Part shown: positions 18,636 through 57,129 of the stretch, piece by piece | Position numbering within the stretch: position 1 is the first letter of the stretch | How the letters are laid out: each line of letters starts with the position of its first letter | Notes under the pieces: generated by a model | What the model saw: only the letters and a program-made list of their open reading frames with translations | Told to the model about the DNA's origin: nothing | Database searches by the model: none | Position numbers and translations under genes: made by a program | Assembly (NCBI GenBank): GCA_037447605.1 | Contig: CM074819.1 | Span: forward strand, 1,634,297 to 1,698,296 | Direction: 5' to 3' | DNA length: 64,000 nt | DNA from: Zygnema circumcarinatum SAG 698-1b | Lineage: Eukaryota; Plantae; Zygnematophyceae

Positions 18636-32593
<13,958 letters not shown>

Positions 32594-32910: not shown

Positions 32911-35867
32911 AAATCCCCCCACAGGGCCGAACCCGACATGTCTCCAAAGCCCTCCTGCGGTCGGCGCCGGCAGGACTTTCTGCCGGCCGGTTGAGCCGGT
33001 TTGGAAACCGGCCGGCAGGACCGGCCCCGCGGCTCGGCCGGCCGGCGACTTGGACGCCAGAGGGCTGCGATTGGTCGGCCCGCCCCCCGTCCGTACAAGG
33101 GAGCTTTACCAATACGATATTATACGATGTGATATTCCGATATACCGTCTTGGATATCCGTCCCTACCGTAGCCGCAGAGGGCTTGTGGCGCCCCCGGCC
33201 TCCGTTGCCACGTGGCGCTCGGGGCGCGGAAAAAAAAAAAAAAAAATTGAAATGGAATGGAACCTGTCTCAGTCAATGGAACTGTGAGCAGCGAACGGTA
33301 CTTGGAAACTGCTCGCCCTGAAAGGGTTTTTAGGGTTTTAAGTGGGAGGTAGCGAAAAAAAGAAAGGCACACTTCTACTGTGCACACACAGGCACACTAT
33401 TGATTGACTCTTGTCGGTTTCCTAACTATTTGGTAATGTTCAAAGGGAAGGAAATCCAGAAACACGAGTATTTCATTCCGGACATCACAAATGACTCATG
33501 TTGCAAAGGATGCGAGCCTTTTTCCACATGCGTTGCAATCACGACAGGTTGGACAATAACACTCTTTAAGGTTTTGCACCCGTTCGGCATCATTATCTAA
33601 CAGACTTCACAATCCTTTGGCTGCTGCGGCACTGCAAGTGTTAATGTATAGGTACATCAAGGTGTTGGTACTTAGTTTCTGGCATGAATGTTGTCCAGGA
33701 GATCAATGTGTTGGTATAGGGACAATGTCCATGCATGAATGGTCATGTTTGGTGTAGGACCGAACATGGGGGGTGCCCGTATCGTTAGGGAACGGTACGG
33801 CACTTCTAGGGATGGTCTAGGATCGTAGGCTTGCGGCTTAGGCAGTACTGTACCAAAGGGGGTGTGCGGAATGCGCCTGTAACGGATGGAGAGCGGCCGT
33901 ACGGACGGCGAGTGATTGTACGGACAAAGCGGAAATGTATGGGTGCGGAAATCTTTGGCGCGAGAGGCGGATCTGCACGAAGCGATATGATTGGTCGCGA
34001 CAGTGCGCAGATCGCGACGCAGTCGTCGTGCGTGACGTGACGCATTGTTTGGCAATGTTCGGTGGAGAGATTGGAGATGTCGGCGACGAATGAAGAGGCG
34101 GCACGTGGATCCTTAGTGGGGTCCGCGGCTCTGACGAGGTCAACTGAGAAGCACTTGAGCGGGCGGCAGACGTGTACGGCTGGACGGCGGAACAGTACGG
34201 ACAACCTTGTGTAGGTCGGTGTTGGCGTAGGTTTACGTGAGGCCGACGGCCTGCCGGCTGTTGAAAGCATGCACTTGCTAGTGCGCCTGTGACATGACAT
34301 TGGGTGTCACGTCACGCCGGCCGCCATTGTATAAGACTCTCTTACTCACTCTCTCTGGATGTTATGCTGCTCGACCGTTGTTTTTCTAGGAAGAGCTTGC
34401 AGAGGCTGATTCCTAGAGGAGTCCAGCCTTGTGTATGAAGGTCGGGAAGGAACTAGCTCTCATCATGCTAAGCTTGTGAAGGCGTTAGGTGGTGTCTCCC
34501 TCATGTGTTGAGGTAGAGGAAGAGTTCTTGGAGGCATGAAGTGTTTGGCAATTGTAATTGGGTCGTAAGCTATCTGTCACAAGATAAGATAGTGCTCAGA
34601 ATCTAGCATAAGGGATTTATGTCGATTTCCTAAGGAGCTTGTGTTACACTCATGATTATTGAGAAGTTTTAGGGCCGTGGGCTTTCTCCTTTCTCCTTAC
34701 TACTGTGTCATTTGTCATGTGAGTCCTTGTGTTGGACTGGCGTGGTGGATGAGTGGAGGCAACCATTATATGGGCGGTGTGTCGCTTCACACGAGGAGAC
34801 CATTGGAGGAACGTGGAGTCTGAAGGAGCCAAGACCATGGAGGGGATGACGAAGTGTTCTTATAGGTGGCGTGTTTTGTATCCGTTGTACGTACCTGGCG
34901 AGGGGTGGATGAGAAGGCATATCATAGCGGAAGTGGTATGTGGCCCAAGGAGAAGTGGAGGAAAGTTTTGAGCTTCATCCGGGCATGTGTTTATCCTTCC
35001 TAGAGTCCCCCTTTGCACCAACAGAAAGGGCCTCCGAATGCATCATTCGAGGTAAGGGTTCTGCCCGCCAAAACGTGTACGAGCATGTGGTCAGCACTTC
35101 TTGATGTTTGCGGCACGCAAAGGATATGAGCAGTTCTCCCGCTTCACCTAGTGAGAGTCATGGGGTGAACTTGTTTTGCAGTTCTGTTTGTGCGATTCTT
35201 TTTAGTTCACTACCAGATCTGCCGCTTATAGAGCTGTCTCCTTTGCTCCACACCAGTCAATACCATAAATGGTATTTCAAGATCACATAGGTGTATTTAC
35301 ACTATCAGTTGAAAGAAATATGAGTTGATTAAAATGATTTCCATTTTGTTTACAACACACTCCCTCTCAGATTTTTCCCATAAATCACTCACTTACTTCC
35401 CCCGCCTAGCAATACTTCACAGGTCAGACCATTGGATCAACCATTGCAATGGTTGTGAACCATTGGATCGCGAGCCAGCCAACCATATACTGAGCCCGCC
35501 CCATAAGAAGGTGATGGGCGACCACAGTACCAATCACAGTTTAGCATACCAAGTCAAACTTCAAAATCCAATGTTTGAAACTCTTGACTATCTCAAGCAA
35601 GCATCACTACCCGACGATCCTCATTTCTGAATTTTTTACCTGCGCCAAAACCAGCCAGCGCCTCTGTTTGGAATGTCTCCAGTCCTTTCCTGTTCACTGT
35701 TTTCAAGTACCAACATCGTTATGTTTCTGAGATTCATTCGGATCATTTCCACACGATGTTCACAATTTCCATGTCCTTTGACCACATCTGATTTACTGTT
35801 CCGTTCGCGCTGCAGGGGCTGGTGAAGACAGAGGGAAGGGCGGAGAAGAAGGGCTCGGAGGGGGACG

Positions 35868-38800
35868 TTAAGGGGCTGGACGACTAGGAGGAGGTTTACG
35901 CAGAGGGGGACTTCTAGGAGGGGGTCGAGGACTAGGAGGGGGTGGACGTGGAGGGGGGCTACGAGGAGGGGGTCGAGGACTAGGAGGGGGTGGACGCGGA
36001 GGAGGACTTCGAGGAGGAGGTCGAGGACGAGGAGGAGGTGGACGCGGAGGGGGACTCGGAGGGGGACTTCGAGGAGGGGGTCGAGGACTAGGAGGAGGTT
36101 TCTGCGGAGGGGGACTTCGAGGAGGGGGTCGCGGGCTTCGAGGAGGGGGTCGCGGGCTTCGAGGAGGATTACGCTGAGAGGGATTTTGAGGAGTGGGCCG
36201 AGGACTAGGAGGAGGTGGTGAAGGTGGAGGAAAGGGTGGAGGAGAGGGGCTCGGAGGGGGTGGTGAAGGCGGAGGTAGGGGCGGGGGAGAGGGGCTCGGA
36301 GGGGGTGGTGAAGGCGGAGGTAGGGGCGGGGGAGAGGGGCTCGGAGGGGGTGGTGAAGGCGGAGGTAGGGGCGGGGGAGAGGGGCTCGGAGGGGGTGGTG
36401 AAGGCGGAGGAGGAGGTGGAGGAGAAGGGCTCGGCGGTGGTGGTGAAGGGGGAGGAAGGGGCGGAGGAGAGGGGCTCGGAGGGGGTGGTGAAGGCGGAGG
36501 AGGAGGTGGAGGAGAAGGGCTCGGAGGTGGTGGTGAAGGGGGAGGAAGGGGCGGAGAAGGGGGGCTTGGAGGGGGTGAACCTGCAGTAATTCAGGGCATT
36601 TCATGAGTTTCAGTTCAAAGCTAATGGTGGAATCACTTCTTCCATGGCTTACATACTCTTAAAACGTGATATTTCATCAACTATGTGCCTCTCATGCAAT
36701 CTGTCTCCACGGAAAATCAGATTCCTATGTCATTTCTCGGGCTACGCAATTTTTTTTTTGAAAAGCTGCGAGGTCAAACTCGCAGGTTATCTAACTATTG
36801 CAGATGGAGACGACATAGGTTATTGGGATGGGTCGTGAAGATTATCAAAAGCTAAAACATGTTATTGTAGGAGCACCCTCGTTAAATGCTCGTCAAACCC
36901 TGCACCATCTTCTGAATGAGCTTGTTTGAGTTCACAAATTAATACTTGAACTATGCTTCTAGAAGTTCGAAAATTGAATTGGCGCCAACACATGGACATT
37001 CAGTTTGCTCTGTCAGCAATGGTTGGTTGGTTGGTTGACGACAGTGTACAAGCTGTTCAAAATGCGGTACTTCCCACTGCCTATGCCACCCTTTCCTTTG
37101 CCTTTCAAAGGGAATCTGCACGTAATAAGTTACTTACGGCGCAGAATACATTTTTCAGATGACAGCATATATCCTGGGTCACATGTGCAGGTGCCTGTGT
37201 CGAACCCGCACGTGCCAAGTCCCCCGCATGCTCCATCGGAATCATCGCTGTTGCAGAAGGACGAGCACTCTTGCTGAGATCTCTGCGAAGAAGGTGCGCT
37301 ACATTGGAGGGTAATGTCGTTGCGGTAAATGCAGTTGTTGGCATATCGGCAGTATTGATAGTGGGGGCCATAGGGTTGCCCAATCAATGTTATGTTGATT
37401 GGCCCGGAGAAGTAGTTGTCTTGGATATACGCGTCGACAAGGTAATCGCTCGTAAGGGTTATGGAGCCTGTCAGTTTGTTGTTTTCTAAGTTCCTGGTGA
37501 CATGAAGGGTGCACATGAGAGAGGGGGGAGCATTACAGCTGAAACTTTTTAAGTTTCTGTCATGTTTGTGTCACAGCCACTACAAATGTTATGCTTCGAA
37601 ATCACACAAGTGACCTTGGAAACTTTTTTCACAAAACATGAGATAAACAATACTCATGCAAGTGCAGAATCAATGTAATAGCTCGAGAGGTACGAATGCT
37701 TTGTAACCGAACAAAAAATCAAACTGCTGCAACTACAACTTTATCGATGTAACGGCGCTCACAGGTTCGACAGTTGGGTGAGTTTACTGATGAAGCCGGA
37801 CACTCTCCCCTCCAGTTTGTTGTTACACAAGGACCTGCAGACAGAACGACGAAAAACGAAAAACATGAGGCTGATTCTGATCTGAACAGAAGAAAATCGA
37901 AACAAATCAGGCATGCAACTCCACGTTCTGTTGTCCGTGAAAAACTATTTATTTGGATCCGTAGACCTCCAAGAAAACTTGTGCAAAAGCATCAAAAGCG
38001 ATAACTTTACAACTAGACGAATTCTCGAACGCAATTTACACAGACGTCACTAACTTTTAAGCTTGCGAATGTGCAGCCTAGCTAGGACGCGAGCATGCAT
38101 TGGCAGCCCCACTTCTTTAAAGCTTACATTGATATTTTGCACTTCCACTTCCAATAAGGGAAAAAACCACTCACAACTCTGTTAGATTCGAAAGGTTGCC
38201 GATAGAATCCGGGATAGAACCCGATAGGGAATTACCACACAAAAATCTGCAAAGAAAGAAGAGGCTTCAAGAGTCTGGCCGATGTGTACAGCAAAAAGCG
38301 AAACTCATGGGGAACGACAGCTCAAGTGAATGCCAAAGAATTGAGTCGAGCAACTGCAGTACGTCCGTTTGCGTACACGTGACGTGACATCCTGGACTAA
38401 AGCTTTTGCACATGCAGCCAGGGAGGACAACAAGCATGCATTGGCACTTCCCTGAAAGTTGCATTGTTTTTTTGCCATTCCATTGTCACATAAGAAAAAA
38501 ATCAACTCACAGTCCTTTTAGATTCGCAAGGTTGCCGATAGAATCCGGGATAGAGCCCGACAGGGAGTTACTACGCATGCCTCTGCGACAAAGAAAAGAG
38601 GTTTCACGAGTTTGGCCAATGTTTGCAGGTAAAGCGGAGATCATGTGGAAAGAATGCTCAAATGAATGTCAAAGTATGAAGTCGAGCAACTGCAGTACGT
38701 TCGTCCAAGTACACGTGACGTGACATCTTGCACTTTAAGCTTGCGAATGTGCAGCGAGTATGCATTGGCAGCCCCACTAATCTTGCAAACTTGCATTGGT

Positions 38801-41800
38801 TTTTTGGACTTCCAATTCAACTAAGGGAAAAAAATATTTACAAATATTGCAGATTCGCAAGGTTGCCGATAGAATCTGGGATAGAGCCCGATAGGGAGTT
38901 ACTATCGATTTCTCTGAAAAAAAAAAAAAGAGGCTTCACGAGTCTGGCCGGTGTTTGCAGCAAAAAGTGGAGGTGGGAAGATTGATCAAGTTAGAGCAAC
39001 TACAGTACGTCTGTCCGCGCACACGTGACGTGACATGCTACATTGGCAGCTCCACTCTTAAAAAATTGCGTTAATTTTCAGCACTTCCATTTCAGATAAG
39101 AGCAAAAATACTTACAAGTATTTCAGATATGCAAGGTTGCCAATAGAATCCGGGATAGAACCCGATAGGGAATTAATGATTAACCCTCTACAAAGAAAGA
39201 AGAAAGTGGCTTCACGATTTTGGCCGAGGATTACAAAAAAAAGCGGAACTCATGTGGAAAAAATTGCTCAAATGAATGCCGAGAGACGGAATCGAGCAAC
39301 TGCAGTACCTCCGTCAATGCAAACGTGACGTGACATCCTAAATTTTAAGAGTTGCAATAGAGCTAGGACAAGCGCATACGCTGGCAACCCCAGTTCATGA
39401 AAGCCGCATTGATTTTCTACATTTCCAATTCTAATGAGGAAAAAACTACTTACAAATCTTGCAGATTCACAAGGTTGCCGATAGAATCCGGGATAGAGCC
39501 CGTTAGGGAATTATAACTCAAGCTTCTGCAAAGATAGAAGAGGCGTGGCGAGTCTGGCCAATGTTTACATCAAAAAGCGAAACTCATGTTGAACGACAGC
39601 TCAAGTGAATGCCAAAGATTTGAGTCGAGCAAAGCTTAAAGCTTGTGATCGTGCAGGCAGGGAGGGCAACAAGTATGCATTGGCCTGAAAGTTGCATTGA
39701 TTTTTTGCAATTCCACGTCAAATAAGGGGAATAGATACTTACAAGCGTGTTAAATTAAAAAGAAAAAAGGGGCTTTAAAAAACTGGCCGATACTTGCAGC
39801 AAACAAGCGGAACTCATATGGAAAGAATACTCAATTGTACACGTGACGTGACATGCAGCCCCAGTTCTCTGAAGGTTAAAATGGCTTTCTACATTTCCAT
39901 TTTCCAAATAAGGAACAAAACACGTACAATGTTTGCAGATTCGCAAGGTTGCCGATAGTAACCGGGATAGGACCCGATAGGGAGTTATGACCCAAATCTC
40001 TGCAAGAAAAAAAGGGGCTTAACAAGTTTGACCGATGTTTGCAGCAAACAATGAAGCGTGTGCATGTGCAACAGTCCCAGCTAGGACGAGATAATGCATT
40101 GGCAGCCACACTTCTCCGAAAGCTGCAATAATTTTCTACAATTCTATTATAAATAAGGGAAAAAACACTTACATATCTTGCAGATTCGCAAGGTTGCCGA
40201 TAGAATCCGGGATGGAGCCAGATAGGGAATTAGACCACAGGCCTCTGACAAAACAACAAAAAAAAAAGGGCTTCACGAGTCTGGCCGATGCGTACTTAAA
40301 AACTGGAACTCATGTGGAAATAATGCTCAAGTGAATGCCAAGGAATCGAGTCGAGCAATTGCAGTACGTGACGTGACATCTTGCACTTTAAGCTTGCGAA
40401 TGTGCAGCCTAGCTAGGACGCGAGCATGCATTGGCAGCCCCACTTCTTTCTAAGCTTATATTGATATTTTGCACTTCCAATTCAAATAAGGGGAAAAAAA
40501 TACTTACAAGTGTGTTAGATTCGAAAGGTTGCCGATAGAATCCGGGATAGAACCCGACAGGGAATTACGACTCAACTCACTGCAAAGAACGAAGAGGCTT
40601 CACGAGTCTGGCCGATGTTTGCAGCAAAAATCGGAACTTATGTGGAACGAATGATCAAGTGAATGCCAAAGAATTGAATCGAGCAATTGCAGTACTTCCG
40701 TCTGCGTACACGTGACGTGACATGCTGAAGCGTGTGCATGTGCAACCCAGCTAGGACGCGAGAATGCATCGGCAGCCACACTTCTCTGAAAGCTACAATG
40801 GTTTTCTACAATTCAATTTCAAATAAGGGAAAAATAAATTACAAAAATTGAAGATTCGCAAGGTTGCCGATAGAATCCGGGATGGGGCCGGATAGGGAAT
40901 TCGACCACAAGTCTCTGACAAACATAGAAATCAAAAGGGCTTCACAAGTTTGGCCGATGTTTGCAGCAAAAATCATCACTCATAAGGAACGACAGCTCAA
41001 GTGAATGACAAGGAACAACGCCGAGCAACTGCAGGTCGTCCATCCGTGTACACGTGACGTGACATCCTGAACTTTAAGCGTGTGTTCATGTGCAGCCAAG
41101 CCAGGACAAGGGCATCAATTGGTGGCCCCACCCCTTAAGCTGCAGTGATTTATTAGACTACTATTTCGTAAGAGAAGGAGGTACATACACGTATTTCAGA
41201 TTCACAAGGTTGCCGATAGTATCCGGGATAGAGCCCGATAGGGAATTACTACCCATTGCTCTGCAGAAAAGAAAGAAAGCTTCACGAGTCAAGCCGATGT
41301 TTAAAGCAAAAAACGACACTCCTGTACAAAAAAGATCAAGTGAATGCCGACAAACGGATGCGCGCATGCATTGACAACCCTACTTCTTTGAAAGTTGCAT
41401 TGGTTCTCTGCACTTTCATTTTAAAAAAGGGAGGAAATACTCACGTGTTTCGCAGATTGGCAAGGTTGCCGATAGAATTCGGGATAGGGCCGGATAAGGA
41501 ATTAGAATGCAAATATCTGCAAGAAGTAAAAGGAGGGATGGCGAGTTTGGCTGATGTTTACAACAAAAAGCGAAACTCTTGTGGAAAGGAAGCTCTAGAG
41601 AATGACGAGGAAGGGAGTCGAGCAACTGCTGTAATTCCGTCCGTGTGTACACGTGACGTGACAACCTAAACTTTAAGCGGGTGCCTGTATAGCCGAGCTA
41701 GAACGCGAGCATGCATTGGCAGCCCCTCTTCTCTGAAAGCTGCAATGGTTTCTGCACTTGCAATTCAAAAGAGGGAAAAGAGTAGTCACAAGTATTGCAG

Positions 41801-43861
41801 ATTCACAAGGTTGCCGATGGAATCCGGGATAGAACCTGTAAGGGAATTCGAATACAAGTTTCTGCAAAAAAAAGAAAAGGCTTCACGAGTGGGGCCTATC
41901 TTTTACAACAAAAAAGCGAAACTCTTGTGGAAAGAAAGCTTTAGTGAATGACGAGGAAGGGAGTCGAGCAGCTGCAATGCATCCGTCCGTGTGTACACGT
42001 GACGTGACATCTTGAACTTTTGCATGTACAGCCTAGCTAGAACGCGAGCATGCATTGGCAGCCCCACTTCTTTGAAAGTTGCAATGATTTCTGCACTTCC
42101 AATTCAAAAGAGGGAAAAGAGTAGTTACAAGGATTGCAGATTCACAAGGTTGCCGATGGAATCCGGGATAGAACCTGTAAGAGAATTAAGTATGAATGAC
42201 CTGCAAAAAAGAAAGAGGCTCCTCAAGTAAGGCCGATGTTTGCAGTAAAAACTGGATCTCATGTGGAAAGAATGCTCAAGTGAATGACGAGGAACTGAGT
42301 CGAGCAATTGCAGTACGTCCGTCCATATACACGTGACGTGACAACCTGAACTTTAAGCGGGTGCCTGTATAGCCGAGCTAGGACGCGAGCATGCATTGGT
42401 AGCCACACTTCTTGAAAAGCTGCTGTTTCCTGCACTTGCATTTCAAACAAGAAAATAAAACACTTACAATTCTTGCAGATTCACAAGGTTGCCGATAGAA
42501 TCCGGGATAGAGCCCGTTAGGAAGATAGCACTCATGTCTCTGCGACAAAAAAAAGAGGTTTCACGAGTTTGGCCAATGTTCGCAGGTAAAGCGGAAATCA
42601 TGTGAAAAAAATGCTCAAATGAATGTCAACGAATGAAGTCGAGCAACTACAGTAAGCACTCGTGATTTCTGCAAGCTGCATTGATTTTTGCATTTCTATT
42701 TCAAACAAGAGAGATGAGTTACTTGCACTTTTATTTCTTTGTCAAGCATTCCTATTCCTTGTATTTCAGATTTGAGGCATAAATACTGAGAAGATCTGCA
42801 CATTCGCTAGGTTGCCTATTGAAATCGGGATAAAAACCCTTAAATAACTTGATTCCAACTCTGTGCAATAAAAAAGGACAACAGTATGCGTAAGCAAGCT
42901 CACTTTCTTTGAAAGCTCCAGTGGTTCAGTGCTTTTACTAATTTAGTACGTCGTCAACATCTGAGCTCTCTCTCTCTCTCTCTCTCTCTAGCTCTCTTAA
43001 CTATGAACTCGCACACACGCATGTAACACATCCATATGGAATGGAGTCACTCACAAAGTTGTCAACTTTGTCAGGTTCCCGATGGCAGGTGAAATGGTTC
43101 CTCCATATCTCCTGAAATTACAATACCTGCAAATGGCGGGTTACCAGTGAAAGCGTCAGAAAAACAGGGCTCCAGCAAACGAGGGAGGCTCTTCCTGATC
43201 AGGTTGTCTGAACCAAGAGGCCCCCTTTAGCCCCCTTTTTCAGAAGGATTCTTCCCTCCTAGCAGCCTCGGTAACAGTTCAGCAGCTATGGAATCCGTGG
43301 ATCACTCCAAAATTACAAGCGGTGTTCAGTCAAAGTGTAGCTCACAGCTGCGTGACGCGACCGTTTCCGTCGCATGTGATCCCCGCCCAGGAGCTGCAGT
43401 CGCTGCTACTCGCCGTCCAGGAGGTGAGTCGTGACCCGTCGGAGAGTGCCGCCTTGACAGTGAGAAGAGCATCCCCTGCGGCCCAAACGCGAGAAGATGC
43501 AGGAATGAGGCCTACATTAGCTTCAAATTTCACAGAGAGAAGGGAAAGTAAGATTTCCCTCTCCCCACACATGGAGGCTTATCGCCGCAGATTATACAGA
43601 TCTTTCCTGGTTATGTTAGACGCAAGGGTGGGCGAGCGGCTCAACGACCGGCCCTGCCGGGAAGCGTCTGCAGAGGGAGGGAGGGCAAGCCTCACTGTCT
43701 CGCGGGTCGATGTTGACCGCGGAGGCGATGGCAAGGAGCAGCAAGAGGAGGATGAGAGTGAAAGGGAGGTGGGGAGAGGGAGGGCGCGAGGAAGAGGAAG
43801 AGGGATATGGAGGAGAGGGAGAGCGAGAGCGAGAGGGAGAGGGAGAGCGCCAGGCCGCCAT
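35868..43861 (-). CDS. Gene B: secreted LRR-extensin-like paralog of the N-terminal half of gene A (SP-LRRNT-16 single-LRR exons-Cys/EGF-extensin, ~840 aa)
   Basis: Exons 43696-43861 (signal), 43346-43475 (LRRNT, near-identical to A), 72-nt LRR exons at 43055, 42468, 42129, 41790, 41445, 41189, 40843, 40508, 40173, 39928, 39454, 39116, 38842, 38511, 38175, 37763; 37138-37493 (356 nt, as in A); Pro-rich exon from 36580 to TAA at 35868-35870. Confidence 0.85.
38040..42870 (-). repeat. LRR exon-intron cassette array of gene B (14 intact + 2 dead units, period mostly 331-346 bp)
   Basis: The core aaggttgccgatagaatccgggatag recurs with homologous flanking introns. Exon spacings are 339, 339, 345, 256, 346, 335, 335, 245, 474, 338, 274, 331, 336. 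Confidence 0.95.
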
Positions 43862-44963
43862 GGCGGCGCAAAGGGTGAGGGCGACGAGTGGCGTCGTCAA
43901 GGGGCGCCGCGGCGACTAAAGCTCCGCCGCCGCGGCTGCCGGGGAGGCGGACGGCCACGTGGCGCGTTTCCATTTGCTGAAGTTTTTCTTCCGCAATTTT
44001 CAAGCATTTCAAGACAAAAAAATATCGTAAGATTTTTTTCGTACACGATACTAGAATGAAGTATCGTGTTCGTACGCATAGCCGACAACCGACATATATG
44101 TACGGTACGAATAATAATTTATGCTTCTCTAACCGACCATTTCGTACGGTCCCGCCACTCGACGACAGGCTCGCAGCCGCGCTGCGGGGAGTGCCTCACT
44201 GATGTCGTTGGTGCCGTCCAATTTCTCCGTACGGTCACGGGCACTAGAGGACAGCCACGTGGCAGTGGCAGTTGCCCGTAACCAAGACGTCCATTCACCG
44301 CATACGGACAGAATTACGGCGACGGAAGGACACACGTAACAGCGCGTGAGCACAACTAGTGGAGCCACGTGGTGCCCTACCACCGGCGGAATGCAGCGAT
44401 TTGCGACAAAGCATGCGTGACGCGGCGGTGCGCGATTCGCTGTCTAAACCCCGACACGTGACAGAGGCCTCCGTATGGATAGGACAGCGTACGGACAATG
44501 TGGGAGCCATACGGACAGTTCTCATCAGTCCGTTAATTCGCTGCTTGCCACGTGGTAGTCACGCGGATTTGGGGCGTGAAGGTAGTGGATTGCGTGCCTG
44601 ACCTCCACGTGTCTATTTTTTATGGCGAGCAGAAAAGGATTCACTGTCAGCGAATGGAATAACGCCACGTGGAACACGGTCAAGATGTGATGACCACGTG
44701 GCGACGACGACGCGGCGCGGCGAAAGCCGTTTCCATGTGACCGTTTGACGGTGCCGCCGTTCACGGCGTACGAACTGCGGCCGACTTGGAGCAGAGAGCG
44801 AGAGAGCGCTGCGGACAGTGCGCACTGCGATTTGCAAACTTTGGCCCAACCGTTGGCAGTGCCTCGCAACCGTTGGCAACACGAATCGCCAATGGTTGGT
44901 TCCTCCCCCCCCCCTTATGTCAGCGTTGCACAGGTCGGACCATTCGATCGAACATTTGCAATA

Positions 44964-45417
44964 GGGGGAGTCAGACCTTGACCATCGCTCGCGGAATTGA
45001 AAGATTCCGCCGGCGGAAAGGTATTGATTTCGATTGCAGAATTCGGGTCGGAAACCGCGGCTCCCCCCGAACCTGTCTGTCCCGTCCGTACTTCGAAATA
45101 GGTTACGAAAATGAGATACAGGCTCGGCGCCCGAGCCTGTCGAACGTCCACTTTTGGCGGAAAAGGCCTGCCGTACAACGCGGAATTGGCCCGACGGGCT
45201 CGCGGAATTGGTTTGGCGATGGACAAGGTCTGACTCCCCCTAATCCCCTCCCCCTCCCCCCGTATCTCATTTTTGTGACCTATTTCGAAGTACGGACGGG
45301 ACAGACAGGTTCGGGGGGAGCCGCGGTTTCCGACCCGAATTCTGCAATCGAAATCAATACCTTTCCGCCGGCGGAATCTTTCAATTCCGCGGGCGATGGT
45401 CAAGGTCTGACTCCCCC
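44964..45417. mobile_element. MITE family 1 (TIR GGGGGAGTCAGACCTTGACCA): full copy plus inverted partial copy
   Basis: Full copy 44964-45240, partial opposite-orientation copy ~45262-45417, TA flanks. Confidence 0.85.
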
Positions 45418-45625
45418 TAATGGTTGTGAACCATTGGATCGCGATCCAGGCAACAATTGTAATGGTCGCAATCCATGGGATGTCAATGGTTGTAAGCCAT
45501 TGGATGGCGATGGTTGCGAGCCATTGGATGGCAATGGTTGCTAACCATTGCAATGGTTGCGAACCATTGAACCGTCCAACCATTGCCATGCCATGGTTGG
45601 CCAATGGTTGCCGATGCAATGGTCC
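45418..45625. repeat. CAATGGTTG/CCATTGGA minisatellite
   Basis: Degenerate ~20-27 bp units. Similar units at ~35430-35480, ~28045-28085 and ~16540-16640. Confidence 0.65.
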
Positions 45626-46022
45626 GACCTGTGCATCGTTCCTCTCTTCACTTTTGCGCCTTGAGCCCATGCAGGACACGTGTCAGTGCTTGGCGGAATC
45701 ATGCTATTTGGGACATTTCGGGCCGTTGGATTAACCTCCCAGTAGTAGGTCGCGAAAACAAATTAAGATAGTTGCTCAAGGTTCTGGAATGAATCTTCAC
45801 CGATAGGCCGTCACGTAGCACTACATTTCCAAGTATTGGGGAGCCGATAAGGATAAGGACGATGGAAAGAAATAGATAAAAAATAGACTTAGATTGGAGT
45901 TTCAAATTCATCCCTCAATGAAGGACACTAACAACTGCAAGTTTAATTTTCCAATGACAGTTTAATAAATTACGTCAAAATTAGTTTTTTTTACCGAAAT
46001 TTCATTGAGATTTCTGTAGCAT

Positions 46023-49000
46023 TTAGGAGAGAACCCCACATTTCGGAACCCCTTTTGGAGGGGGAGGGATGTCCCCCTTCTCGCCCACCACGCGCAGATA
46101 CAACTGCAGACCGAGGTCCACGTGGGGATCCATGTGACCTGAACCAAACGGAGAACAAATTACGGAACTAGTCAGCTTTAAACTGCGCACTCTTCTGACC
46201 CCCCTGAACCCCAAGCCCCAAAATTCCGAGTTTTGAAAGGCCCCAAAACTCATCGCACAGAGGTGCTAAGAATGAGCTCACGTACAATGCATGTTCCACA
46301 CGCCCACATTGTCAGCCACGAACCGGATGGCGACCCATGTGTCGGAGTACACCGTCACCGTGTTACGGACCGGCGGATCTATGAGGTTGTATGTGTTCTC
46401 ATAGTCTTGTTCCAAGGAGATGTTGTACAGCCCCTTCCCATGGCCGACTGTATAGAAATCGTAACCATGAAGATGCCATGGATGGTGAAGGCCATTAGGG
46501 TTGTTCTGTTGTAGGCAACGAAACAGTTAAACTGTCAAACGCAGGCCGTTTAACGGAACTACCGAATATGGAAAAGGAAGTGAACAATGTGGAGTGGAGA
46601 GATAGTGGGAGAGGAAAGAGAAGAAAGAAGAAGGTAGGAGAGAGGGGAGAGAGAGAGAGAGAGGGGGAGAGAGGGAGAGAGAAATACATACTTGGAGCAC
46701 AATTTGCACAAAATCCCCCTTCTTCACTGTCAATACATTTGACCTAAACTCGGGAGTAAGTGTCCCTTCATTCTGATCAAGTACGGCAAAGTTGTGGGGG
46801 ATTTCATTTTTCTCGAAGAAGTCGGTCTGGTTCATGTACGCCTGATAGAGCGCGGGAGTGCTTGGCGCAACAAAGGAGTAGTTGTTAACGGCGTAACGAA
46901 AGTAGCCGTCCAAACTCACTTCGTTCCATTGAATGGAGAAGTAGCGATCTACCTGCATCAGCCCAAAAAGGACTTGAACAGATGAAAAGGTTAGAAATTA
47001 GGGTCTACAAGTGATGTTATCACACTGGCTGCCTTCCCTCTAATCTGCACTCTCTACCATCCCTCCCCCACTATCTCTATCTCTCTGTCTCATTCCTTCC
47101 CTCCGCCACTCCCTTCCCTCACAACCACCTTCTGTCAACATACCCTTGTATTTACTATTGTTGGTTCCGGCTTCCTCCCACCCTCCCAACCTCACTTCTC
47201 CCTCCCCAATTCGCCCCTTCCCCTTCTCCTTCTCCTCTCCCTCCTTCCTAACCCTCCCCCTATCCTTGTACGTCTCCCACTCTCCTCGTCAACTATCCCC
47301 CCTCCCTCTTTCTCCTCCCAACAAAAACAACAACATTATCAACTCCACCATCCATTATGGAGAAAGCTGCCGATTGACCTACCTTTCTCTTAGCGAGCTT
47401 CGGAAAAGTGTGAAGATTTTTAAGGGATTTCTGCTGCCTCAATCCGAAATTTTTATCACTTTCATCGGGACCAGTTGGGAATGGAAACCACCAAGGCTGA
47501 GTGTTATTGAAAACGGGCGAGTCTTCATATTTGAGCACTGCCAGACCGGGGGGGTCTACGAAAGTATTATATCTCCCATTGATACCTATCCAATAGTTTC
47601 GTGGTTTCTGATCCGCAGTGAGAAGGATATCATAAGATTGTCCGGGGTCTATATCGAGGGAGTCAACTACGACCGGTTTTAAGTACCAGCCATCATTCAT
47701 AACGAGAGTGAAATTGTGGCCCTGCATGGAGGGAGTTATAGTTGACCAGTTAAGTGGCAGAGAGGGAAAGTTAGAGAGAGAGAAATAGCAGACTTAAAGA
47801 GAGCAGAGAGAAAAACAGGGAAAGGGGAGTAGAGACAGATACAACGACGAAGTTTTGACTACGCGAAGATAGCGATGTTAAAGAACTCACGAAGATGGAA
47901 TATCATAGAGAACTTTGTTCTAGGATGGGTGTCAGTTCTGCAGCTTGCGTGTGAAAGGGAAAGAGAGGGCGAGGGGAAACGAGAGGGAGGAAGGGGAGAG
48001 AGATAGATATAGTCACGGAAGTGGAAGGGAGAGAAGGGAAAAGAGCGAAGAAGAGGAGGATCTTTTGCAGAAGTATGAAGGGTGTACTTATCCTCAGGGT
48101 TGTACCTCTATTTTGAAGTTCATTTGTGCTAATAGAGCCACATTCACAATCCGGAAGCGGTACGTTCCCCCCGGTTTCACTACAAAGGAAGAAAAGGGAT
48201 TGCAGAAGGTGCTTTTTCTGTCGCATTTTCCGCATTTCCATGTGCCTTCATATCCCGGCGGGCATACATACTGCATTTTGCATTCCAGAAAGGAAATAAA
48301 CAAAAGGAATAAAAAGAAAAGAAGTATTAAGACCCTCTCCACCTCTCCACCTCTCCCCCCCTTCCCGCCTCCCNNNNNNNNNNCTCCCTCTCTCTCTCTC
48401 TCTCTCTCTCCTCTCTCCTCTCTCTCTCTCTCTTCGACATACCTGCTTGCACCACGTTACTCCCCTTCCGTTCACGAGGATGCTATCCGGCTGACCAAGA
48501 CTCACATACGTTTTGTTGAATATTCCATCCACGATGTCGCCGCTATATCTGTTCTCCCACAACTCGACAGACCCTTACAATATATCAAATGAAATCTTTC
48601 ACAGTATCCCCAAAAAAATCTCTACCGCCCTCGCCTTCCCCCACTCTCCCAGTTTCCGTTTCGCCGTTCCCCTGCCCCCCACTTCCCTCTCCCTCTCTGC
48701 CTCTCAACTCCCTCTCCTCCCCCCTTCCTTTTTCTCTCCCTCTCTTTCCTTCTCCCTCTCTTCCCCAGTCGTCGCTCCCCCACTCCCCTTCACTCCCTCC
48801 CTCTCTCCCTCCCTCCCCTCCCTCTCTCCCTCCCTCCCCTCCGTCTCTTCCTCCCTCTCCCTCTCTCCTCACCCTCCCTCCCTCTCTCCCTCCCTCCCTC
48901 CCCTCCCTCTCTCCCTCCCTCCCTCCCTCCCCAACTAAGAGAGATCCTTGGTTACCTGTGATACCAGTCATTGAGGAGAACGTGGTAGTCGCCTGCCGGT

Positions 49001-50144
49001 TTTGGAAACGGAACCTTCGAATTTTCTTTCGGCGAAATGATGAGAGGTCCGTACAGAGACGACCTCCGAATGTCCATATGTCCATGGTACCAAAAAGTTC
49101 CATGCTGACCGTTCACCACGAAGTCATATGTGAAACATTCTCCGGTCTGAGGGCCACAAAAAGAAAAAAAGAAAAAAAAAAGGGGGGGGGGAGGGGAAAT
49201 GAATAAGACGATGCGATTAACGGAGGTTTGAGGTTTTCGGCTCCTAACAAACAATTTTCAAGATTTATGTTTTTTCAATCACAGTTATCAAGGTGGGGTA
49301 AATTTCGAGATATATGGAATTAAGGGTAAGGAAGTCAGAGGAGTAAAGGAGAGGGAGAGCGAGGAAGGAGAGGGGAAGGCGAGTGTGGTGAAACCGGGAT
49401 GCAATAGAATGGAGGGGTGAGAGGGAGAGCGAGGGAGATTGAGGGGTATCAGCCCACGAGTAGAGAAACAGAAGATTTTCCTTCTTTACAGCATAGACAA
49501 GAGGGCTCCAGCTTAAAAAAGCTAAGAAAAATAAATGTCAAATTGTGGCGTGAAATGAAAAGAGGGAGAGAGGGAGAGGGAAGGGAGAGGGAGGAGACCG
49601 GTATGGGGCACTGCGAGGCTAATGCAGCTCCGTCCATCCACTGCTGCCCCTTCATGTGCAGTCCGTGCCTGCGCAGATCCGCCGGAAACCCATATAGGAA
49701 GAGAGAGAGAGGGGGAGGGGGAGGGAGGAGGGGGAGGGAGGAGGGGCAGGGATGCAGACAGACACAGAGCCTGCTTTAGAGCGAACGAGAGCGATAGACA
49801 CAATCACAAAATAGGGAGAAGAGGGAGGGAGGGAGGGAGGGAGGGAGGGCGGGATGCTAGGAGGGGAAAAGGAGAATAAGAGAGGGGAAGGAGAGCCGCT
49901 CCTCCTACCAGTGCATGGTGATCGGCCAGTACATGTCGTTGCAGACCTTCGCACGGATTCTGTCCCCTGTTACTGCATGTATCGGCGGCCCCGGGTACTG
50001 CCCGTTTATTGCGGGCACCGTTTTAGTCACGCAGTCAGGCGCAATGGTCACATAGGACACGTTCCAAAAGACCTCCACGAGCCCTCCCTCTACCGCTCGC
50101 AGGGACCCTAAAGCTGCTACCGCAGCGACTGCCCATACCCACAT
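46023..50144 (-). CDS. Secreted multicopper oxidase (ascorbate oxidase/laccase-like)
   Basis: Signal peptide, then [23 protein letters not shown]|[76 protein letters not shown]|[11 protein letters not shown]. All four Cu-binding motifs occur across GT-AG exons. Confidence 0.93.
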
Positions 50145-50964
50145 TTTGAGCTTTCTCCGCTCTCTCTCTCTCTCTCTCTCCCTCTCACTCTTCCCTCCAG
50201 CCCTCTCTTTCCCCCACTCACTCACTCTCCCCTCACCTCTCTTCCTTCGACACTTCTCAAGCTGTCATTTCCCTCTCTCAAACTGTCTCTCTCTCCCTCT
50301 CTCTTCCCACTCGCGCTCCTCTCTCCTCGTCGACACTCCCCTCCTCCTCCCTCTCTGTCTCACTCTCTAACTCTCTCCCACTGCCGCCTCCCACTCCCTC
50401 TCTCTCTCTCTCCCACTGCCGCCTCCCTCTCCCACTCTCTCTCTCACTCTCCCACTGCCGCCTCCCTCTCCCACTCTCTCTCTCTCTCCCCCCCACTAAC
50501 CACCTCCCACTCCCACTCCCTCCCTCCCTCACTCTCTCTCCCTCAGTCACGCCCTCCCTTTCTGACCCCGACAGATCGCGCGTTGTCCCGCTGGCGGACA
50601 CTTCCAAGATTCCTCCGCGGCATCTGTGCGGTGGCGGCAGCTTTTTGGACCGGCTCTGACTAATTTTGACTAGTCATGACTAGTCTAGATCAGTCATGAC
50701 CAATTGCCACTGGTTAGCCGGTCGTGTGAGTGCATCGAAAACTTTCTGAGCTTTGCTGGATGTCGGTGCTTGTCAATACGTGTCGGTGCGTGTCGGTGAA
50801 TGTCGGTGAGGGACAATCTTCGACAAAATGCTTGGGTGCTGCATCGGCAGGCCTCTACAATTTAGGGGAATCCGTACGAGGTCCCTTAAATATTCAAAAA
50901 CGATTCTAGGCCGTTCCATATCTCTGTAAGGGTGAATAAGGGATTGTCGGAAATGACACAATTA

Positions 50965-51715: not shown

Positions 51716-51992
51716 GGGGGAGTCAGACCTTGACCAGCGCCAAACCAATTCCGCGAGCCCGTCGGGCCAATTCCACGTTGTACGGCAGGCCTTTTTCGCC
51801 AAAAGTGGACGTTCGACAGGCTCGGGCGCCGAGCCTGTATCTCATTTTTGTAACCTATTTCGAAGTACGGACGGGACAAACAGGTTCGGGGGGAGCCGCG
51901 GTTTCCGACCCGAATTCTGCAATCGAAATCAATACCTTTCCGCCGGCGGAATCTTTCAATTCCGCGGGCGATGGTCAAGGTCTGACTCCCCC
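51716..51992. mobile_element. MITE family 1, 277 bp
   Basis: TIRs and internal sequence near-identical to 54439-54715 and (reverse) 44964-45240. Confidence 0.9.
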
Positions 51993-53267
51993 TAATACTT
52001 TAAATACTTTTTTAAGGGAATTCCCTTATTTGTAGAGGCCTTCATCGGGCGTAACAGCTTCGGCAAGGGTTCGACGAAGGTTCAGCGAAGGTTCGGCTGC
52101 CGCCGAAAGCGACAGCTACCGAACGGCGATGCGGGAGACGACCGCGGCCGCTAACGACAAACGTACCGAGCTCGCCGCAGGAGGCGGCCATGGCGGCCGG
52201 CTCGTTCCCTCCCTCCACCGTGCGGGCACGGCGGGTTGGCCACTCTCTCTCTCTTTTTTTCTCTATCTCTCTCTCTCTCCCTCTCACTTGTTTCCTCTCA
52301 CTCTAACCCATTCTCCCTCTCAGCCCTTCCCTCGATCTCTTTCGTCCCTGACGTCTCTTGTTGTCCTTCTCACTCACTGTGTCTCTCTCGTTCTCTGCCC
52401 GTGTCTCTCTCTCTCTGCCCTTCCCCCCCTCCTCATCCCTCTCGCTGCCCTCCTTTCTCTCTCGTTGCTATTTTTTTCTCTATCTCTCTCTCTTTCTCCC
52501 TATCTAGTTGCGGGGAAGGTGAGGCACAAAGAAGGAGAGACGGAGTCGCGAGGACGAGAGAAAGAGAGGGAGAGGTGGGGAGCGAGCGAGTCTTTATCAG
52601 TCTCTTGCAGTCGTCGGACGGTGCCGCCGAACCTTCTCGATGGGTGGGCCAAGGAGGGGTCGGGAAGGAACGCGCAGGCAGGCGGGCAGCCGCACACCGA
52701 GCGATGGCCCGCGGGGTGGGGATGGAGGGAGGAGAGAGGGGGAAGGGGGAGNNNNNNNNNNGGGAGGGGGAGGGAAGGGGAAATAAAAAATCTGAAATTC
52801 GAGTGTGTGTGTTTTCGTTATTCAACCTTGAAACGCGATCGATCGGTGGCTGACAACAGCTTTTATAAATCCGAGGGCCCAAAAGCAACAATGTATCCGC
52901 CTCTGGGGAGAGAGGAGAGGAAGGGAAACGGGAGAGAGGGAGAGAGGCCCCGGCCCCTTCTCCGTCCTTTCGGGTCGGTTGGTCGGTCGGCAAGTGTCGG
53001 CAGCCCTCCCTATTGGTCAACCGGCGGCGCCGCCCGCCAGCTGGCGGGCCGCCACTGGCGGAACTAGCCGATGTTTTTTTTTCACTTCCTGCGCGTCACG
53101 TGGCGCGCATCCATTGGCCCGTTTGCAGCTGCAAATTTTTTCTTTCCCGAGCCGCGTTTCGTCCGCCCATGGCTCTTACCGGCCGTCCGTGGGTCCGCTC
53201 GGAGCGGGTACTCCTCGATTTTCCATGTTTATCTAGACCGAGTACTCCTCCGCGCGCGATCGTAATA

Positions 53268-53646
53268 GGGGGGGTTAGACCTTGACCATCGCCAAACCAA
53301 TTTCGTAAGCCCGTCGGGCCTATTCCGCCGTGTACGGCAGGCCTTTTTCGCAAAAAGTGGCCGTTCGGCAGGTTCGGGCGCCGCGAATTCAAGAAAATAA
53401 TTATTTTACCTTCGTATCTCCGAGCCAGGTCTGACCCCCCCCTTTTCGCCCCGCCGCGCTCCCTCCGCCGCCCGCCGCCTGCCGCCCNNNNNNNNNNATT
53501 TTTGTAACCTATTCCATAGTACGGACGGGACATGACAGGTTCGGGGGAGCCGCGGCTTCCGAACCGAAACCTGGAAACGAAATCAATACCTTTCCGTATA
53601 GGGAATCTTTGAATTTCGTAAGCGATGGTCAAGGTCTGACCCCCCC
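53268..53646. mobile_element. Diverged MITE family 1 copy (spans an N gap)
   Basis: gggggggttagaccttgaccatcg ... cgatggtcaaggtctgaccccccc, TA flanks. Confidence 0.75.
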
Positions 53647-54438
53647 TATTAGGGTACGAGTACGTATTTTGTTGCTTACGGGATTCCGCAGTTTTACTGA
53701 GAGTCGTGTAGTCTGACAGTTCAAGATAACTAGAACAACGGGTTCCGTGTTTTGTACTGTGGCTTTTTCACCTGTAGGTGTGTTCTTACTCATCCGTATA
53801 TATATAAATAGGTACGGGCACACCCCTCCCCGTCATTTTCTCCCGAAAAGTCGGCTCATCGGTCGGACCAGCCCATCCGTACACTTTCTGTACGGTTTCA
53901 CCGGCCGCCGGCCGTTGCCAGCCCGTTTGGGTCCTGAACTCCTGCCGGCGGCGAGGCGCCAGTCGCTGTATGGCCGGCAGCGGTCAGCCGGTCAGTCGGT
54001 GAGTCGGTGCCGGCCGTCGGGTGGTCGGCCGGCAGAGGTGGACCCGTCAACTTGCAGCGGTTGGCGGCCGGCTTTCAACTGACAAGAGAAATCGGCGACA
54101 TGTGATTGGTCGGTGGTCTGGAATGTGCGCTTATCGCATTATATGTGACAAAGTGAAATTTTTCCTAAAGTCACAAATTTGGAGCTTCGAGATACTACGG
54201 GGAAGGTCCGCTTGATAAAGTGAATACAATGTCTCTTTGCTTCGCTGCACGCCGAAGGATGGTGGAAGCAAGGCACCGCTGCAAAGCGACGGAAATGCGC
54301 TGTCGATAAAAAAGTTGCAAGGATCGCTGGGGAAGGGCTTTCGGGGCCGTGCGCGTATCTCAAAGGAGCGGTGGGCGCACTGGCGAAGGAAGACATCCAA
54401 CCGAGCATCGAGACAGCCAAAATTTTCGACAGCCAATA

Positions 54439-54715
54439 GGGGGAGTCAGACCTTGACCAGCGCCAAATCAATTCCGCGAGCCCGTCGGGCCAATTCCGCG
54501 TTGTACGGCAGGCCTTTTCCGCCAAAAGTGGACGTTCGACAGGCTCGGGCGCCGAGCCTGTATCTCATTTTTGTAACCTATTTCGAAGTACGGACGGGAC
54601 AGACAGGTTCGGGGGGAGCCGCGGTTTCCGACTCGAATTCTGCAATCGAAATCAATACCTTTCCGCCGGCGGAAACTTTCAATTCCGCGGGCGATGGTCA
54701 AGGTCTGACTCCCCC
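54439..54715. mobile_element. MITE family 1, 277 bp
   Basis: TIR GGGGGAGTCAGACCTTGACCA at both ends, TA flanks. Confidence 0.9.
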
Positions 54716-55929
54716 TAATGGAATAAACTCATCGGCAGAGTCGCTGACAACATCCCCGAAAATACGCCGAGAACCGTCGAAAACAAAATAAAGCAACGAT
54801 AGTATATTGTATCTACTGTACATTTTTAGTCTTTATCGAGGCTGGCCATTACGCTTCGTTGACTTTATCGAGGTGTGCTCGGCTTGACTTAAGCAGCTTT
54901 GAGCCGCTGGGATCGTCCCTCTCAGGTACTGCAATTATTGGTCGCAAAATATTGACTTTTAGTCGAATAATTGGTTCTTTCTCTGAGTTTTTGACTGTTT
55001 TCCTTCCAGAATTAAACCCTAAAAACACAAACTTGCAAATTAGGAGCCTCTTAGGAAGGTTTAATGAAAACTGAAAACGTACATTTGGCAAACACCACTG
55101 ACTTAGTAAGATCTTGCTACTAGGGTTTTTTTTGCGTGTGGTCGATTGAGTTCCCCATAACCTTTCAATTCCTGTTCTGAAAACAACAAAAACCAAAACA
55201 ACAACAAAAAAAAAAAAAAACAAAAAAACAGCAAAAAACAAGAACAACAACAGCATTACACGCAAAATCTCGCATGTGAGAAAAAAAAGTATCATCGAAA
55301 ACAAGCGTTCCTCTCCCATTCTCTCCCCCACCGCTTTACCCCAACGCACGAAAATATGTGCCCTGCCAACCAACCTATATAAAAAAAAACAATGACCGGC
55401 ACCAATCAGATCCCTCCCTCCACCTCCCCAGCCTCCGGGACAAATTAAAAAAAGAAAAAAAAAAGAAAGAAACTAAGAATAATTCCTAATACCAAGCCTC
55501 GCGGGCCGTAGTAGACCTCCCCTTAGTCACTACTCAGTGCAAATTGGCACTTTTTGCCAACCTCCCCTCCTCCCTCCAAACCCTAAAACAGAGAGGCCCA
55601 TCCTCCTCTTCTCTCCACCTCAAACGCTGCCCCTGCAAGTCACTTAGCTCACATCACATGAGCCTCTGCTCTTCCCCCCCTTACCCTCCCTCTCACCCTC
55701 TCACCCTCTCGCTCTCTCTCCCTCTGCTTCCCCCCCACTCTCTCACCTCATCCTTCTCCCTCGCCTCTGCATACCCTTCTCAATCATTTCTCCTCCCAAG
55801 TCACAAGTACTGCACATAGTACCTCCCCCCCCCCCCTCTCCCTCCCTCCCACAATCCCTCCCTCCCTCCCTCCCTCCCCCCCTCCCTCCCTCTTCCCCTC
55901 TCCCTCACCTCTCCTACCCCACTCTCAGC

Positions 55930-57129
55930 TCAGCTCCCAGAGCTCCTCAAGTACTCCCGATTCTCCCGCAAGTGTTGCAACAACTGCGAAGCCTTTCTCT
56001 TTGCTCTCGGCGTTCCGTTCCGTAGTAAACTACTGAGAGGGACATCTGTGTTCAGTTTGATGGCCTCTTCCGTGTGATTTGCTCCGTTCAAGCAGAGCGA
56101 AAGAAGAACTGAAGCAGCATTCTCCTTATTCCGAGGAGACCCATTTCCTATTAAATCTACGAGAACGGGAACTGCTGCTGCTTGTCCAATAGAAGTCCTC
56201 CCCTCCAAACAAGTCGCAAGTATGGCTAAAATTGCCAATGCTTCATCGGTCATTCCTGCTCTCCTGTTCACCAAAAGCTCCATTAAGGGTCCCACCACTC
56301 CTGCTCTCACAGCTCTCGCCTTATTCCCTTGGTAGATTGACAGGTTGAACAAAGCAGTAGCTGCATCTTTTTTCCCTCTCACTGTTCCCGTCTGCAGTAG
56401 CTCCACCAATGCAGGAATTGCTCCTGTCTGTCCGATAGAAATTTTATTCTCGTCGATGACCGACAAACTGAACAGCGTTGCAGCTGCGTTCTCCCTCGCT
56501 TCCATGCTTCCGTTTTTCAGTACATCCACGATGGGTTCTATGGCTCCCGCCGACACAATTATAGCCTTGTTTGGATCGTTTATAGAGAGGTTTAGCAGAG
56601 CTGTAACTGCATGCTCTTGGGTTTTCTTATCGGGAGACCCTAAAAGACCCACTAGTAAAGGAATCACCCCTGCATCCGCAATACAAACCCTATTCCCCAT
56701 ACTCCTTTTTGCCAATTTCCGAAGATCTTCGGCTGCTATCCTCTGTATATCCGTACCTCCCGTGAGCAATTTTTCCTTCAATTCTCGCACCAATTGTCGG
56801 TCTCCCGCATCTCCGTTCCCGAGAGCGGAACTGGGGACACGTGCCACCCCCCCCCTGTTGGCCTTCTTTGGAAGCTCTACTCCGTTAGCTTCACACCACT
56901 GCTGGATAAGACTTCGGAGAGAGTAGTTGGGGATGAGGACGGGGTGGGAGAGGACTTGTTGGGTTTTGGGACAGGTCTTGTGGCCCTCCTTCAGCCACTG
57001 CCTACGTACCGTCAACATGTCTGAGTGGCATGAGGGGAGTGAGAGAGAGAGAGAGAGCGAGAGAGAGAGAGAGGGAGAGAGAGAGAGAGAGCAGAGAGAG
57101 AGAGAGAGCGAGAGAGAGAGAGAGCAGGC

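Follow-up and report, generated by a model that had tools for sequence, protein, structure and literature searches.

The 64,000-nucleotide window of Zygnema circumcarinatum SAG 698-1b analysed here (contig CM074819.1, positions 1,634,297 to 1,698,296, numbered below from its first letter) holds on its minus strand a gene, gene A, whose model of about 838 codons runs from a predicted signal stretch through an LRRNT domain, 16 exons of one leucine-rich repeat (LRR) each and a Cys-rich/EGF-like cap to a Ser-Pro extensin tail. Fourteen of the one-repeat exons, A1-A14, form a tandem array (38175-42539, minus strand) in which each unit is a 72-nt exon plus an intron of 173-402 nt, as read from splice sites, frame and intron alignment. 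Each of these exons is exactly 72 nt long, with AG/GT borders and phase 2-2; they start at 42539, 42200, 41861, 41516, 41260, 40914 and 40579 (A1-A7) and at 40244, 39999, 39525, 39187, 38913, 38582 and 38246 (A8-A14). The first-pass annotation had claimed 14 intact exon-plus-intron units, each encoding one 24-residue repeat in phase 2-2, between a distinct first and last LRR exon; this is confirmed by the splice sites and by a frame that stays open through A1-A14 and both bracketing exons.

The array introns align with one another end to end (63-86% identical), which supports the further proposal that the duplicated unit was exon plus intron together; homology of the introns holds throughout the array, while the intron 3′ of A14 resembles the others only over its first ~115 nt. 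Tandem Repeats Finder (TRF) gives periods of 335 and 339, so that the unit of ~335 bp in the annotation stands as the modal unit and not as a constant size: cassette spacing ranges from 245 to 474, because of deletions in the introns. One unit used as a query finds every one of the other 13 units that carry an exon, with E values no higher than 5e-22, and the array is therefore not a chance resemblance. Two further units are dead. At 42791-42862 (minus strand) lies a 72-nt LRR-like pseudo-exon without AG acceptor or GT donor, followed by a homologous intron; and within the A9-A10 intron, at 39735-39760 (minus strand), a relic keeps the exon end and donor of a cassette that has lost its acceptor and most of its exon. 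With 14 intact and two dead units, the array must have held 16 units at one time. Nor is it an assembly artefact, because the DNA run X1 covers 30 of 30 array bins, with no differences among its contigs listed; words of the array are present in six DNA runs at 78-89% (X5 0.80, X6 0.78, other runs 0.84-0.89).

The remaining exons of gene A, all on the minus strand, surround this array. Exon 1 is predicted at 43696-43861, with a Ser/Pro-rich start, signal-like hydrophobic residues at 35-49 (mean hydropathy 2.9) and a phase-1 GT donor; its start codon is uncertain because the version in a tandem paralog, B, is shorter. The LRRNT exon (130 nt, 43346-43475) matches Pfam LRRNT_2 at E 1e-9 and is 96% identical to that of paralog B. 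The first LRR exon (72 nt, 43055-43126) is matched without differences by an RNA contig piece at 43055-43124; it has lost the conserved beta-strand Leu and Asn, both retained in paralog B, and is still transcribed. The last single-LRR exon (72 nt, 37763-37834) closely matches its paralog B counterpart. Next comes an exon of 356 nt (37138-37493), found as an RNA piece, which encodes the terminal LRR, a Cys-rich cap and an EGF-like module and ends in a phase-1 donor. That this exon belongs to the gene had been correctly seen; it is not the end, however, since a 236-codon exon (36580-35868) lies beyond it, joined by a predicted splice, encoding an extensin-like rod with 160 Pro, 21 Ser-Pro3+ runs, an Arg-rich end and a TAA stop, and, in its predicted sequence, no Tyr and no membrane anchor. 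Database searches were run exon by exon, and the exons were joined only to check the frame, in which gene A shows neither an internal stop nor a membrane anchor. The cap exon reaches Pfam EGF_Teneurin at E 0.002, below cut-off. Its relatives, at 32-51% identity, are Mesotaenium gene models and algal transcriptome proteins, in which the LRR-cap module sits before a kinase, a Pro-rich stretch or a papain-EGF-LysM chain; a word-index protein search with this exon gave no match, and is uninformative on longer kin. From this predicted layout, the product of gene A is probably a secreted LRR-Cys-rich/EGF-extensin protein that is itself tethered in the cell wall.

Tandem paralog B (26473-32593, minus strand) shares the frame exons of gene A and carries five cassettes (30738, 30418, 30168, 29954 and 29605), with a cap exon at 28534-28179 and an extensin exon at 27147-26473. 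Its frame is open for 593 codons to 26473, where a phase-1 donor fits the next LRRNT exon, near 26300, and a mosaic LRR-EGF-extensin-LRR-EGF-papain-EGF protein (21000-32593, minus strand) is thus possible; a relative of 1468 residues, P0122, has LRR, Peptidase_C1 and weak LysM matches. The downstream LRR-EGF-papain module (24299-25880, minus strand) itself contains five 72-nt LRR exons in phase 2-2. Since their introns have no mutual similarity, the phase symmetry is an ancestral layout and no special adaptation of the array.

What sets the cassettes apart from one another is their ligand-facing surface. The positions compared were chosen beforehand from LRR structure, as the five of the beta-strand motif xxLxLxx that are exposed: four of these show 8-9 residue types and the fifth shows 4, in a framework that is nearly fixed, notably after the Asn. 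Divergence at positions 1-2 of four face codons reaches p 0.70, whereas intron columns stand at 0.27; none of 200,000 random draws of 8 intron columns came up to the face value. A codon likelihood model that took its neutral rate from the introns, with two-parameter fits evaluated on a grid, gave a non-synonymous multiplier of 5-8 for the face against 0.3 for the framework, and a synonymous multiplier at the face of 1.5-2, compatible with 1. An NG86 estimate of synonymous divergence (dS) at face codons was discarded as inflated by multi-hit codons. Close pairs of cassettes differ mainly at the face, as in A7/A14 (7/15 face, 1/48 framework and 6/110 intron differences). Recombination is not the source of this signal, because it cannot raise divergence above the largest intron distance (0.365). 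These results indicate diversifying selection at the face codons and purifying selection on the framework; the annotation's variable binding surface is thus borne out, the face being the variable part, and selection on point changes explains it best.

Face variation could alternatively stem from targeted hypermutation or patches of gene conversion instead of mainly from selection, and third positions of face codons are indeed raised as well (p 0.52, P 0.006); an identical 52-nt tract common to A5 and B1, and the many related cassettes of the genome described below, would also suit this idea. A pure rise in mutation rate, accelerating synonymous and non-synonymous change equally, nevertheless lowers the fit for A and B together by about 5-6 log units, the Leu and Asn codons between the face codons show no acceleration, there is no stop among 95 face codons, and no face-codon change was seen in the covered regions of X5, a second DNA sample. 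We regard this alternative as very unlikely. Neutral, satellite-like expansion under relaxed constraint, or an artefact of assembly, would account for the dead units and many intron deletions, and is highly improbable given a framework under purifying selection, a face that evolves faster than neutral, the share of array words held by the DNA runs, and spliced RNA.

The introns also record the history of the array. Their mean distance among cassettes is p 0.26, a value close to the 17-23% that separates the single-copy introns of A from those of B. The cassette tree is star-like, with the pairs A2/A3, A1/A13, A6/A8 and A7/A14, and does not separate A from B cassettes; we rejected separate A and B clades on this ground, though a tree constrained to hold the B cassettes together was not rejected (approximately unbiased test, p-AU 0.10). 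On such a tree, the events may have come in more than one order. Nearest neighbours on the tree are often non-adjacent (A1/A13, A7/A14), and distances measured on the 5′ intron halves do not correlate with those on the 3′ halves (rho 0.13, P 0.24). Judging from the introns, the array is old and mosaic, with introns that drift and are not homogenised. In our reading, the units multiplied in tandem in one early burst, roughly when A and B duplicated, and occasional unequal crossover or conversion would have followed. The earlier claim that these processes act on the cassettes can be upheld for evolutionary time, on the strength of the mosaic neighbours, the two dead units and the difference between 14 and 5 cassettes.

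Does one gene nevertheless yield many products? The RNA and strain comparisons rest on assembled contigs, which drop rare isoforms and variants. Runs X7 and X8 are RNA-like, in that their pieces end at exon borders; one X7 contig joins A4 to A5 exactly, and the first LRR exon, A2, A3 and the cap exon also occur in RNA-like contigs, at a depth of 10-30. Among the joints listed, none of intron type at cassette borders, as a skip would leave, was found. Joints of high depth were considered as exon skipping and rejected: their depths are 150-700, against 10-30 for gene A, and their face residues are absent from A. They evidently come from strongly expressed paralogs. In strongly expressed relatives (contig depth about 400-700), the cassette framework is kept and the face residues differ. 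Because these relatives share the framework, and related intron starts appear as loose ends of DNA contigs, the exon-plus-intron unit belongs to a genome-wide family; framework depth in DNA reaches about 2800, against about 48 for single-copy sequence, a ratio that would put the number of related cassettes in the genome at some tens.

Regulated exon skipping, with an intron motif as its control site, would make an isoform repertoire from gene A. The prediction that cassettes can be skipped without frameshift was right, in that 153 of 153 forward junctions keep the frame with a sense codon (117 of them Leu); several cassette donors look weak, and multiple LRR splice variants are annotated for the ROCO genes of Ectocarpus (PMC11378527). 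The consecutive A4-A5 joint, however, means that cassettes are not mutually exclusive, and the skip-free joints described above argue in the same direction; Dscam-type mutually exclusive splicing is at odds with this co-splicing and with introns in which we found no conserved pairing or complementary site. Overall, regulated skipping seems unlikely to us. The annotation had gone on to propose a dedicated combinatorial system, for which we found no support: the phase symmetry is ancestral, RNA contigs are consecutive with no skip among the joints listed, and cassette order in X5 is kept where covered.

The introns do carry a conserved motif that could serve such control. A 14-nt sequence, TGTCACGTCACGTG, has eleven copies in gene A (38376-42343, minus strand), at most one per intron, and a twelfth in paralog B at 30545-30558. 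There are 13 matches with up to two mismatches, where 0.18 are expected by chance, and over 168 sites the copies carry 2 mismatches, where 24.9 would be expected (window-shuffle P below 0.0002). The motif has been deleted from several introns and is kept in two whose flanks are lost. ACGT cores occur in it, and tandem TGAC cores on the opposite strand; we take these, as a lead only, to resemble bZIP or TALE-homeodomain sites. No conserved RNA structure was found in the introns (a weak consensus with energy -3.2 and a covariation term of +0.38), and no full reverse-complement copy that could serve as a docking site exists on the transcribed strand of the window. That the motif is a redundant intronic enhancer is our guess. 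Upstream of paralog B there are two near-copies that face opposite ways, at 34305-34318 (plus strand) and about 34040.

The second DNA sample, X5, differs from the reference by seven substitutions and one 5-nt insertion, the only exonic change (39951) being synonymous. Its contigs link the same neighbours as those of X1 (A14-A13, A11-A10, A10-A9-A8, A7-A6 and A5-A4), and its long contigs mostly end where X1 contigs end; contigs break inside most frameworks, where crossovers would be hidden. Depth in X5 is zero at 38600-38799, in the A12-A13 intron. This gap may be a one-unit deletion, leaving an A12/A13 hybrid, or a filter hole: the word share of X5 is slightly below the expectation from its listed differences (3.4%), and loss of one unit would remove 5.3%. 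An array still varying today, in which strains differ in copy number and the motif acts as a recombination or splicing control site to give a regulated wall-bound repertoire, is on present evidence distinctly doubtful.

Lamprey variable lymphocyte receptors (VLRs) are built of LRR modules with a hypervariable concave face, from an incomplete germline gene with flanking donor cassettes (see the summary in PMC3341825). Gene A resembles them in its modules and hypervariable face, and programmed somatic assembly of cassettes in this style might be read into the repeated intron motif and the one uncovered X5 intron. Gene A, unlike the lamprey genes, is complete in the germline and is expressed, with no evidence of somatic assembly; there are no donor, orphan, flanking or inverted cassettes outside the two arrays anywhere in the 64-kb window. 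Bulk X1 DNA equals the reference in all long contigs listed, and introns 25% diverged, with many deletions, are unlike maintained recombination substrates. We therefore give somatic assembly next to no chance.

We favour, with a probability of roughly 0.77, the explanation that gene A is of an ordinary kind, is expressed and encodes a secreted LRR-extensin-like protein, and that it was shaped by old tandem exon-plus-intron amplification and then by diversifying selection. Ancestral LRR exons were already 72 nt long and in phase 2-2, as the neighbouring gene shows; one exon-plus-intron unit was amplified in tandem, about 16 times; and unequal crossover or conversion in the germline would later have added, mixed and killed units, as the mosaic relations, the dead units and the 14 versus 5 cassettes suggest. 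Diversifying selection, for which the support is statistical, then rewrote five exposed codons per beta-strand while the scaffold remained under purifying selection. The main transcript probably takes the cassettes consecutively, as seen for A4-A5 only, and the LRR horseshoe would bind a ligand that changes over evolutionary time. The pattern of selection would suit, as that ligand, either a surface molecule of a microbe or parasite, or a wall molecule of self or of a mating partner.

Some points weigh against this explanation: it leaves the conserved motif TGTCACGTCACGTG unaccounted for; A4-A5 is the sole two-exon RNA record among those listed, from contigs of a kind that drop rare isoforms; gene A alone rejects a pure mutation-rate increase only weakly (P about 0.03-0.35); and the likelihood test assumes a simplified tree despite recombination, with 19 short sequences.

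Amplification of this kind is a mechanism already known from brown algae and ciliates; for Zygnematophyceae, the algal sister lineage of land plants, our literature search yielded no description of such arrays. In the ROCO genes of brown algae, the LRR exons are 72 nt long and in phase 2, some exons have been inactivated, the concave face is under positive selection and the genes form tandem clusters; LRR splice variants are annotated, and no somatic recombinants are reported (Zambounis et al. 2012, PMC3341825; Teng et al. 2024, PMC11378527). Gene A has in common with these arrays one LRR per 72-nt phase-2 exon, inactivated exons, face selection and tandem genes, and so presents the features of an evolving LRR exon array: exons of fixed length in phase 2, an exon number that varies (14 versus 5) and selection on the face. 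It differs in being secreted (predicted), in having no inverted cassettes and no splice variants among the joints listed, and in introns that are recognisable copies over their whole length; there is no ROC-COR GTPase domain, the gene A model ending in the extensin exon with its stop. In young Tetrahymena LRR genes, exon/intron repeat units vary in number by unequal crossing over (2019, PMC6564038). Tandem exon/intron units, phase-2 introns, nucleotide-level similarity and variation in unit number between paralogs are common to these and to gene A, which differs in its plant-type repeat of 24 residues versus 30, its far smaller scale, its lineage and the absence of any linked retrotransposon that we could find.

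In protein architecture, the nearest comparison is with the LRX/PEX proteins of land plants, which have a signal peptide, 11 LRRs, a Cys-rich linker and a C-terminal Ser-Pro(n) rod, with no membrane anchor (PMC7357788). Gene A likewise has a predicted signal, LRRs, a Cys-rich linker and a Ser-Pro(n) rod without a transmembrane segment; it departs from them in having ~17 repeats instead of 11, an EGF-like module in the linker, one exon per repeat, a strongly diversifying face and a rod without Tyr cross-linking motifs. The N-cap is Pfam LRRNT_2 and not the LRX-specific NT domain, with no LRX match in the PDB; an alignment of the cap profile to LRX2 spans positions 1-79, longer than with most receptors, and the Cys-rich part alone finds no LRX. 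Plant defence LRR proteins of the receptor-like and PGIP types have 24-residue LRRs, intragenic changes in repeat number and selection on xxLxLxx positions, with the repeats usually in one exon. All three of the former are found in gene A, which differs in its intron per repeat and its extensin rod.

The homologous introns provide a built-in neutral clock for the evolution of a receptor surface in an alga close to land plants, and the 5-8-fold acceleration at the face suggests either an arms race or that secreted LRR-extensin-like proteins serve in recognition. Wider importance would follow only if isoform or strain repertoires, or a function of the intron motif, proved true.

Other genes and repeats share the window. 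A U-box/ARM E3 ligase gene (PUB13/14-like) lies at 55930-57018 (minus strand), with upstream exons to about 60265; it has one match at 89% and land-plant matches at 60-65%, similarities that, with those of the cap exon, mark the DNA as that of a streptophyte alga, and its first exon is repeated at 61383-61847, about 1.6 kb apart, as a real duplication or an assembly repeat. Open reading frame (ORF) fragments at 46500-50225 (minus strand) correspond to exons of an ascorbate oxidase-like multicopper oxidase. A dispersed repeat, probably a non-autonomous transposon, occurs in both orientations at 44786-45679, 51730-52035, 53096-53632 and 54237-54791. Finally, a Pro/Ser-rich ORF of 974 codons at 5711-8635 (plus strand) carries a RING-like Cys/His motif at its end.

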